Part shown: in pieces, positions 12,301 through 15,300 of the stretch
Layout of the letters: every line of letters starts with the position of its first letter
Numbering within the stretch: position 1 is the first letter of the stretch
Assembly (NCBI RefSeq): GCF_026571515.1
Contig: NW_026860085.1
Coordinates: 248,001-312,000 of the forward strand
Direction of reading: 5' to 3'
Length of the DNA: 64,000 bases
DNA from: Ruditapes philippinarum
Lineage: Eukaryota
Position numbers and translations under genes: made by a program
The notes under the pieces: generated by a model
Database searches by the model: none
Told to the model about the DNA's origin: nothing
Seen by the model: the letters and a program-made list of their open reading frames with translations, nothing else

Positions 12301-15300
12301 ATTGGAAATGGTTCCTTTGGAGTTGTTTACCAAGCAAAATTAGTTGAATCACAAGAACTTGTTGCAATCAAAAAGGTTCTGCAAGACAAACGTTTTAAGG
12401 TTAGTTATTCATACTTAAATGCCATGGATTGTACTACATTGTGTTCACTTTAAAGCTTGCTTGAACACAATGTGCTCTGAGGTGAGCTTAAAAGAGGGCT
12501 TGATGTTTGTCATGTGCTGTTCTTCTTCATCCACAATTAACAACAACTCCTTCACCACATGGTAGATATCAAATTTCATAGAAATGATTTAACACTTCTG
12601 GCATTGCATCATGTAATGTTACAATGTAGCATTGCCTGTTTTTTCGACAAAATTTAAAAAGTAAATAATTTCCTTACTCAAAAATGGCCTTGTCCAGGTG
12701 TTAAGACTTGTTGTATAATAATAAACCTCCAGAGTATTGAATCATTTTCAAAATTTTTGTATGTCCTTTAAATTTATATCAGATAGATCATTATAGTTTT
12801 ATGTGTGGACAAAGTCTGTTGCACTGGGTCACTTTTAAGCTCCCTTCTGCTTATTGAAATAATACCATTTTAAACTTTGACCTCCCGTACTGTATGTAAA
12901 AGTGAGAGAAGCTTTCATGATGTGAAGACCACAGAAGCCTGTTTTATGATCAATTACAAAGCAGTGATTTTTCTCACTTAATTGGGAAGAGGCCTGAGCC
13001 TCTTGATTTTGGGAAAAATTATCGCTAAAATTGCTGATTTGGGAAGTAAAAAAGCTGGTTTAAGTTCAGATTTTTGGGAAAACTGCATGATTTTAAAGAA
13101 AATTTCAATTGGGAAGAGGCCTTTTTTCGGAGTCTGTTATATAAGTAGAAAAATCACTGCAAAGGAATTTAGAAGTAGACATCAGCTGAATTTTGATAGA
13201 ATACAAACATTTTTATGAGTGAAAATAATACTTGATTTATGTAACAATCAAAATAGAATAGTTATGACCATCTAGTCTTACATAATACATTTATTGTCAG
13301 TGAGATGAAACAAAAATTACAACAAAAAGATGATTCCATGCAATCATATTATATTATATTGTTATATTTTGTAAGAAATTATTTTGTTTTCATGTTAAAT
13401 GTTTATTGATACACTCATAACTGTAACTGTTGAATTCCCAATTTGAATTGTATCTTTTTGTTTGACTTTGTAAGTATGTCCACTCTGTTAATAAAGAAAT
13501 TTTTTCTCTAATATGATTACAATTATATGTCCACACTGTAATTAAAGAATTTTTTTCTAATATGATTACAGAACCGAGAGTTACAGATAATGCGCAAGTT
13601 GGAACATCATAATATAGTCAAACTCAAGTATTTCTTCTATTCAGCTGGAGAAAAGGTAATATACATCATGTACCTGTATATACATAAAGTTGGTGATCTT
13701 CGACATACATCATGCTTTGTCTGATTTTCTGAGATATTAAAAGCTTCCACAGATCATTATATAAATATATTAGACACTTTGCTGTCTGTTGTGAAATAAT
13801 GAAACAAAAGAAGATTCTGCTTCTGTTATATTCAATTATTATAATAACAACTGAATTAATAGATAATACATTTGGTTTATGACCAGTGTTCAATATGGTT
13901 CACAAAAACTATTATATATTAGCTATTTGTTAATGAAATATAAATTTTATTGAAAGTTTCATGGTCAAAATTTATTTATATACTTATGTGAAAGTATGTA
14001 CTTCAAATCTTTGTAAAAATTGTACGCTGTTGTAATAAGAACTCCATAAAGTTTAAAATTTGGAAATTAAATAATATTTACATTGGTTGGAAAACTGCCA
14101 ATTGTTTTTTCAGAGAGTTTATATATTGTTTATTATGATGTGTTTGCCTCTGTTGTTTATTTGTCATCAGAAAGATGAGGTGTTCCTGAACTTAGTTCTA
14201 GAGTATGTACCAGAGACAGTGTACCGAGTTGCTCGACATTATAGTAAATCCAAACAGACAATACCCATTATCTTCATCAAGGTACTGTACATGATTTCAT
14301 GTGTTTAAAGGGCACTCCAGTAATACTTAACAATATTCATTACAATACTGAGACTGATACTTAGATTTTTGTTTTCTTTTGAAAAAAAAATCATCTGATT
14401 TCTCGCTTCCAATTCCCACAAAAAATGCAAAATCTTGTATATTGTTGTTTTGTTTTAGATAACACAAAACATATGCACATTGATAATTGAAGTCTCAGCA
14501 TTGTATTGAAATCTGGACAGAAATGAACAGTTTGTATGGCAAGCAATGAATAAAGGTTTTAAAAATTTTTTGTAAAATGTTTAGAACTCAACTGAACTTG
14601 AGAAGGCATAACACTTAGGATGTCTTGCTCAGGAAATTGAGATTTCTCTTATCATTGGATATCAAGTTAAGTTGCTTGTCTTGCCAAACTGAACTCATTT
14701 CTGTCAACACAACACTGGAGTTCCCTTACATTAACATAACTGTTCTTTTCAAGTTTATATGTTTGTAACATTTTCAGAAAGATGAGGTTTTCCTGAATCT
14801 AGTTTTGGAATATGTTCCAGAGAATTTGTATAGGGTAGCTCGACATTACAGTAAAAATAAGCAAACAATCCCAATGCTTTTTATTAAGGTATGTATAGCT
14901 TCAAGCCTTCAGTCTGAGGCACCCTAGGCTTTGGTTAAAGCACCGTGACTTAATGCTGAGATACTCCCAAACTTGTCACTTTCACTCTTGTATAGACTTC
15001 GGGGCACAGCAACTTTCAGTGAGAGGTTATCTATATGAAGTTAAGTTGCCGGTGATCCTTGTGTATGAACACTTATCTTTTTTCTCCCCTTTGATGATTC
15101 TCTAGTCATCAGTGACATATTATTGTCTATTTAACTTTCTATTGTGACTAATATTTCAGCAAACAGCTGCTTTTTCTTTCTATTGACTCATACAGAATTT
15201 ATTTTACAATATTAACATTTCTCTGAATCGTGCAAACATTATCTCTCTACTTTAATCTTCTAACAGATTTGTTGTGAAATAAATTTTTATTAGGTATTGT

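Follow-up and report, generated by a model that had tools for sequence, protein, structure and literature searches.

A tandem pair of GSK3 exons

The stretch of the Ruditapes philippinarum genome analysed here (contig NW_026860085.1, positions 248,001 to 312,000 of the forward strand; 64,000 nucleotides (nt), hereafter the 64-kilobase (kb) window) carries a GSK3 gene in which exon 4 is present in two tandem versions, 4a at 14171-14281 and 4b at 14778-14888, both on the plus strand. Each version is 111 nt (37 codons) long and encodes 37 residues of the hinge region. The intron between them (14282-14777, 496 nt) has ordinary GT-AG splice sites, and no U12-type splice sites are present. The donor of 4a is weak (GTACTG), and that of 4b reads GTATGT. 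The two exons are identical at 84 of 111 DNA positions and at only 18 of 37 third codon positions, which indicates that the duplication is old and that both copies have been under purifying selection. We found no third copy of the exon within the window and no GSK3 paralog elsewhere in the 1.4-gigabase (Gb) genome, in which 4a and 4b are the only two copies of the exon found. As an original prediction made from the DNA of this locus had pointed out, a transcript that includes both exons stays in frame, since each is 111 nt long; nonsense-mediated decay (NMD) is thus unable to police double inclusion. The same prediction proposed that the 4a-4b intron folds into a multibranch RNA structure that could enforce mutual exclusivity of the two exons, and this intron is the subject of our analysis.

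Separate use of exons 4a and 4b in RNA contigs

Assembled RNA contigs revealed that each version of the exon is spliced between the same neighbours. In X15, exon 3 is joined to 4a, which is followed by 128 nt that do not lie on 4b. Two 157-nt contigs from X17 have 4a (depth 11.9) in one and 4b (depth 6.3) in the other, at the same internal positions (18-130), and share the same 30-nt exon 3 and exon 5 flanks on each side, which is the signature of a k=31 assembly bubble. These 30-letter flanks consist of the 17 nt before and the 27 nt after the aligned piece together with letters common to both exon forms, namely 2 nt of exon 3 that match the intron AG, the 11 identical first letters of the exon and the final AAG. 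The 27 nt downstream of 4a in its contig translate to the start of exon 5. These joints and the bubble demonstrate that both 3-4a-5 and 3-4b-5 transcripts exist. The ratio of 4a to 4b depth varies by sample, with only 4a in X15 and about 2:1 in X17.

A metatranscriptome contig of a related species (L025, Ga0210350_1062775) holds a full GSK3 mRNA with the order 3-4b-5 only, at 82-91% exon identity. Its hinge motif (within 300-1100 of that contig) differs by a Tyr-to-Cys change (LECVPENLY). Across X15, X17 and L025, each exon is joined to the common flanking exons and none is joined 4a to 4b; the two exons are thus mutually exclusive at the level of contigs. Raw RNA reads (X22, X24) gave essentially no depth on the exons, probably because reads of conserved genes had been filtered, and the transcript evidence used here is that of the assembled contigs.

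Predicted closure of the 4a-4b intron by a bipartite helix

Folding of 14282-14777 gave a minimum free energy (MFE) of -128.3 kcal/mol, compared with -94.7 ± 6.0 kcal/mol for dinucleotide shuffles (z -5.65; 0 of 100 shuffles as good), and the MFE structure contains every stem that had been listed for it. All of these lie on the plus strand. The outer, intron-closing helix pairs 14308-14321 with 14714-14727 (13 of 14 positions), and an inverted-repeat scan returned the same helix (14 nt, 93%). The scan likewise confirmed the 20-bp stem of arm A, in which 14336-14355 pairs with 14491-14510 (18 of 20; 20 nt, 90%) to close a 175-nt hairpin (14336-14510; z -3.8), and the inner stem of arm B (14589-14601 with 14662-14674, spanning 14589-14674; 12 of 13; 13 nt, 92%). 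The base of arm B, read directly from the sequence, pairs 14516-14526 with 14695-14705 without a mismatch (11 of 11) and is continued by 14528-14533/14686-14691 and 14538-14543/14680-14685. Arm B as a whole is a long, near-perfect hairpin (z -5.3).

Outside the outer helix, a 26-nt 5' spacer (14282-14307), with a small predicted hairpin at intron nt 7-22, separates it from the 4a donor. A 50-nt tail (14728-14777) leads to the 4b acceptor and contains the candidate branch points CATTAAC (A14734), CATAAC (A14739) and TTCAA (A14751). The outer stem has a predicted pair probability of ~1.0 both in the intron alone and in a 1.75-kb context. Together with the first five pairs of the arm B base, GACAG/CTGTC (14516-14520/14701-14705), it forms a bipartite closure that encloses ~85% of the intron.

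The closing helix in a diverged ortholog

Searched at the protein level, the 4b reading frame matched exon fragments from public assemblies, and a scan of metagenome contigs yielded 80 GSK3 exon loci. The only genomic one with both exons, L024, is a 3.3-kb marine-metagenome contig with 4a at 177-287, 4b at 703-813 and 415 nt between them. Exon identity to the window is 98 of 111 for 4a and 95 of 111 for 4b (~87%), and third positions are identical at 26 and 24 of 37, respectively. Each exon is closer to its ortholog than to its paralog, and the 4a/4b duplication thus predates the split between the window and L024. In mollusc GSK3, this duplication of the exon for the hinge and alphaD is old, and both versions are expressed. 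The 4a donor is weak in both species (GTATTG in L024).

The other 77 metagenome GSK3 loci (L026-L103) carry a single PETVY-type exon within the sequence available, and many are spliced and cDNA-like; from these sequences, the tandem duplication looks restricted to a subset of animals. Protein P0011 (Logan source) contains a further, more distant exon of the 4b type (IPENLY...KQKQTIPISFIK) that continues into exon 5 and follows unrelated sequence, which suggests that the ENLY version of the exon is spread beyond the two species compared here.

Outside the exons, only the 22 nt before 4b (14756-14777 in the window, the sole intronic BLAST match) and a few border bases align between the two loci. 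L024 nevertheless has a closing helix (317-331/631-645; 15 nt, 93%) of 15-16 bp (16 pairs with G-U) at a matching position, 29 nt past the 4a donor (26 in the window) and 57 nt before 4b (50 in the window). The length of the 5' spacer is thus kept and its sequence is not. We compared the pairs on a hand-anchored register, as the MAFFT/RNAalifold alignment misaligned the arms and its output was not used. The arms of the outer helix are recognisably homologous, and their differences are correlated. From the window to L024, two pairs show double compensatory changes (A-U to G-C and U-A to A-U), one C-G pair is deleted on both strands, one G-C pair becomes G-U, and the single C/U mismatch of the window is an A-U pair. 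One pair of the helix is therefore broken in the window and none in L024, compared with a rough neutral-decay estimate, derived from third-position divergence, of ~4 of 14 per lineage.

The GACAG/CTGTC helix is conserved as well. In L024 it continues the outer helix directly (336-340/620-624), whereas in the window it forms the base of arm B; both it and the outer helix have predicted pair probabilities of ~1.0 in the two species in 1.5-1.75-kb contexts. Arm A, which sits between these two helices in the window, is absent from L024. There, 4 nt lie between the outer arm and GACAG, compared with a 190-nt gap on the 5' side in the window, nearly all of it arm A. To judge from this arrangement, arm A looks like an insertion into the helix junction, or has been lost in L024. 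The inner stem of arm B is specific to the window and has no alignable counterpart in L024. The interior of the L024 intron is not significantly structured (z -1.7, compared with -5.3 in the window), and the conserved element is thus the bipartite closing helix rather than the whole four-stem fold. The covariation that had been proposed as a check was accordingly found for the outer stem, and arm A and most of arm B turned out to be lineage-specific. L024 also has an 18-nt local hairpin (678-695/727-744; 83%) with one strand in the polypyrimidine and acceptor region of 4b and the other in the 5' part of the exon itself; it has no equivalent in the window.

The closing helix compared with its genomic background

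We discounted the shuffle z-score of the whole intron as a sign of function because the window, which is rich in miniature inverted-repeat transposable elements (MITEs), holds many far stronger folders; a dozen loci fold at -215 to -260 kcal/mol, and by GC-corrected MFE the intron ranks only 44th among 502 windows of 496 nt across the 64-kb window. A box test specific to end-closing helices was more telling; it takes the energy of the duplex that intron positions 15-60 can form with positions -100 to -35. The window intron scored -24.2 kcal/mol, a value matched by 18 of 5000 shuffles and by 1.1% of 1530 pseudo-introns drawn from the same window. The L024 intron scored -40.6 kcal/mol, matched by none of 5000 shuffles and none of 1540 genomic pseudo-introns. 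Among the eight GSK3 introns of the window, only the 4a-4b intron has such a helix (0 of 1000 shuffles as good; p >= 0.07 for the other seven).

A possible block of the 4a-4b intron

To judge from these correlated changes, the outer helix is a real predicted structure whose pairing has probably been selected. We hold with fair confidence that it functions in the choice between 4a and 4b, and with moderate confidence that it works by blocking the 4a-4b intron. The structure is the natural suspect because it is confined to this one intron, NMD cannot help, the splice sites are ordinary, and the 4b acceptor is the nearest one once exon 3 has been joined to 4a. Our best explanation, which we advance tentatively and at slightly less than even chances, is that a selected bipartite helix makes the 4a-4b intron non-productive, so that 4a is never joined to 4b.

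If it forms in vivo, the bipartite helix would bring the 4a donor, 26 nt away, beside the stretch that immediately precedes the branch point and polypyrimidine tract of 4b. Two modes of inhibition can be envisaged. The single-stranded path from donor to branch point may be too short to hold the U1 and U2 small nuclear ribonucleoproteins together, or the helix may cover the region upstream of the branch point where U2 is anchored, in which case the exact distance would not be needed. The second mode would also hinder splicing of exon 3 to 4b unless the helix were opened in a regulated way. Both modes would leave the exon 3 donor and the exon 5 acceptor free for either exon, and arm A and most of arm B would be lineage-specific, self-folding filler that leaves the closure undisturbed.

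The first mode depends on distance. The linear path from donor to branch point is at least 450 nt, of which the helix loops out 420 nt. Through the helix, the 5' linker is 26 nt in the window and 29 nt in L024, and the 3' linker from helix to branch point is 4-6, 23-27 or 38-47 nt depending on the candidate. The total for the UAAC/UUAC candidates is 32-33 nt in both species, in agreement with the ~33 nt originally predicted; the other candidates give 49-56 nt (49 and 56 for UUCA(A/U)) or 64-76 nt. Splicing is sterically blocked below ~50 nt between donor and branch point (PMC7969005), and modelling of the yeast A complex requires a combined linker of at least 42 nt, with no fewer than 20 nt from stem to branch point (PMC12350175; bioRxiv 10.1101/2022.07.22.501175). 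The specific claim that the helix cuts the effective path to ~33 nt, below the steric minimum of the spliceosome, and so constitutes a new device for exclusivity, strikes us as unlikely.

Several points weigh against a block of the intron. The UUCA(A/U) motif is common to both species at -26/-29, and its totals of 49 and 56 nt lie at or above the ~50-nt threshold and are permissive; a branch point at -9 to -12, within the conserved block (14756-14777), would likewise give a permissive geometry at 64-76 nt. In the window, an AAG (14751-14753) lies between the originally favoured branch candidate (A14734) and the real acceptor, and by the AG-exclusion rule the branch point is thus likelier to be nearer the acceptor. 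Pairing that bridges an intron is usually described as activating (PMC11802352, a review). The folds are thermodynamic predictions. The structure comparison covers two species, in which the helix arms differ by ~25-30%, near the neutral rate, so that the case rests on correlated changes and not on sequence conservation. Finally, no 4a-4b joint occurs in the assembled contigs X15 and X17, and low-level double inclusion is possible because contigs drop rare forms. What stands of the proposal that the fold is the exclusion device is thus a real predicted fold, a covarying outer helix and the absence of 4a-4b joints from contigs; the interior of the fold is not conserved, and the 33-nt distance hangs on a candidate branch point.

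Alternative explanations

The strongest rival, itself on the unlikely side, is that the helix is functional and sets the ratio of the isoforms while exclusivity comes from other factors. The helix would then act as a bridge like the zipper stems of yeast introns, or as a switch in which the G-run of the 5' arm, just past the weak 4a donor, and the pyrimidine-rich 3' arm, ahead of the 4b branch region, hide each other from putative splicing factors. Zipper stems activate splicing with total linkers of 42-85 nt (PMC12350175; bioRxiv 10.1101/2022.07.22.501175), a range that would accommodate the 49-76 nt obtained here if the branch point lies at -26/-29 or nearer the acceptor, and activation by bridging is what reviews describe for pairing within introns (PMC11802352). 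The arms lie at +27 and -50, the usual sites of intronic enhancers and silencers of alternative exons. A weak 4a donor in both species, and depths that differ from 4a alone in X15 to about 2:1 in X17, would also suit control of a ratio. However, bridging the 4a donor to the 4b acceptor ought to promote 4a-4b joining, which is seen in no contig, and the correlated changes keep the pairing rather than the arm sequences.

It is improbable, in our assessment, that the helix has no function, whether as the remnant of an inverted repeat, a foldback or a transposon inserted long ago or as a product of chance complementarity in a hairpin-rich genome. The window offers ample raw material for such a relic, as palindromic MITEs are present in at least 10 copies and many of its segments have far stronger folds than the intron; arm A resembles an inserted hairpin, the interior structure is not conserved, and a single ortholog was compared. 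These points are set against a helix that stands at the same position in an otherwise scrambled ortholog intron with 0-1 broken pairs where the rough neutral estimate is ~4 of 14, that is unique among the eight GSK3 introns, and that in the joint box test of the two species lies far below chance.

Copy number speaks against a transposon origin as well. The original prediction had raised the case in which the outer stem is the terminal inverted repeat of a multi-copy, Kolobok-like MITE. We rejected this candidate, as BLAST of the whole intron and of each half matched only the intron itself in the 1.4-Gb genome. The BLAST tool passes over very common words, and pattern searches should be unaffected by this. 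A genome-wide pattern search with the 23-nt intron terminus, allowing up to 3 mismatches, gave 1 forward and 0 reverse matches, compared with 1 and 3 for a control. Arm A is single copy in the genome, and no genomic near-match of the 23-25-mers from arm A and arm B extends past the probe; the 43 matches of an arm B 25-mer all come from one unrelated tandem repeat, in which only the 26 nt probed match. No target-site duplication is visible in the flanks of 14308-14727 or of 14336-14510, and L024 has no TTAA flanks. Viral contigs contained no relative.

Still less probable is a docking-site/selector system of the kind known from Dscam, 14-3-3 xi and ATE1, of which the helix would be one half, with one arm also pairing with a competitor in intron 3 or past 4b. 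Tandem-duplicated exons often gain competing structures (PMC6071210, PMC7797038), and the 3' strand of the inner stem (14659-14675) has a 16-of-17 direct repeat downstream of 4b (15033-15049). However, within intron 3 and the 2 kb past 4b, which were the range searched (with L024 covered to 176 nt upstream and the 5.2-kb intron to those 2 kb), neither arm has a partner better than shuffles in either species, and candidate pairings that would loop out 4b are not significant (p = 0.19, 0.09). As a second selector the direct repeat was rejected: its downstream copy pairs with 14589-14601 only weakly (-8.9 compared with -12.7 kcal/mol), in a part of the fold that is not conserved, and the repeat is not seen in L024. 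This copy lies 145 nt downstream of exon 4b.

We give very little credence to the last alternative, that the intron hosts a structured non-coding RNA or a double-stranded RNA substrate with no bearing on exon choice (the hairpin precursor of a small RNA, say, or a target of editing), for which the long, near-perfect arm B (z -5.3) would be the natural candidate, as an Rfam scan of 13500-15500 gave best scores of 15-23 bits against thresholds of 40-85 and matched no family even at E <= 10, the RNA depth of the intron is ~1 read with no pile-up and no A-to-G differences, and the hairpins are not conserved in L024.

Repeats and other features of the window

The folding-energy landscape of the window is dominated by a palindromic, MITE-like element of ~240 nt, and its abundance makes shuffle z-scores a poor guide there. 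At least nine or ten copies are present, with arms of ~105 nt that are 83-95% complementary and loops of 21-32 nt. They lie at 2098-2334, 4118-4360, 5683-5919, 7511-7747, 19091-19328, 27943-28185, 42179-42415, 52234-52478 and 55240-55472, and partial copies lie near 28526-28640, 48532-48759 and 58345-58586. Downstream of exon 4b, an interspersed repeat (16306-16539 and on to ~16900) opens with a short perfect hairpin and is followed by two tandem copies of a ~180-nt unit (about 16545-16720 and 16720-16890); each of the four RNA runs covers it thousands-fold and shows numerous variants and chimeric joints. In an Rfam scan of the whole window, the sole match above threshold was a tRNA gene at 44200-44272 on the plus strand.

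Comparison with known systems

Most in-frame mutually exclusive exon pairs have no known device against the joining of both exons. If the closing helix creates steric exclusion, the steric model would extend to introns of any length, and would offer a simple way to look for further cases, by screening the introns between such exons for a conserved closing helix with one arm close to the donor and the other close to the branch region. A 33-nt tether, if it is real, would make this intron alone unspliceable while both exons stay usable with their outer partners, and would explain why intron growth has been tolerated only as self-folding insertions such as arm A. If the helix is zipper-like instead, it would be an example of the yeast zipper motif in animal alternative splicing. 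Our literature search found neither a GSK3 mutually exclusive exon pair nor a steric block created by a helix. Steric hindrance was reportedly combined with RNA structures at Dscam exon 17 (by Yue et al. in 2013), the steric part there being linear proximity.

The 4a/4b pair resembles the steric-hindrance pairs, such as alpha-tropomyosin exons 2/3 and OGDH 4a/4b, in which adjacent in-frame exons are never joined because donor and branch point are too close (~50 nt; PMC7969005). In those pairs the closeness is linear: the branch point is 25-46 nt past the donor, and a long pyrimidine tract comes after it (PMC7969005). The intron studied here measures 496 nt (415 nt in L024) and has its candidate branch points close to the acceptor, and only a helix that loops out 420 nt would bring donor and branch point together. 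Conserved long-range intronic pairing with compensatory change at tandem exclusive exons is also known from the Dscam1 clusters, 14-3-3 xi, human ATE1 and DNM1 (PMC11802352, PMC7797038, PMC6071210). Those systems have one docking site and at least two competing selectors, and pairing either loops out one exon or activates the exon next to it. The pairing described here consists of a single helix whose two arms both lie between the exons; it loops out neither exon, and the range searched contained no competitor.

In geometry, the helix is closest to the zipper stems of yeast, known from RPS17B and roughly a quarter of the introns probed (PMC2536676, PMC12350175). These start a few tens of nt past the 5' splice site, end a short way before the branch region and loop out most of a 400-500-nt intron, and they recur as stems while their sequence is poorly conserved. 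Zipper stems promote removal of their intron, whereas the exons that flank this one are not seen joined in contigs, and the distal branch candidates would give a linker of 32-33 nt here, below the minimum of 42 nt for the A complex. Palindromic MITEs and foldback elements in introns, which are abundant in the window, likewise form nested inverted repeats and strong predicted hairpins, but the 4a-4b intron occurs once in the genome, shows no target-site duplication and is matched in a diverged ortholog by a helix at the corresponding position that carries compensatory changes. Together, these comparisons place the case between established classes: it shares the logic of the steric pairs, the conservation pattern of competing structures and the geometry of zipper stems, and the full definition of none of them.

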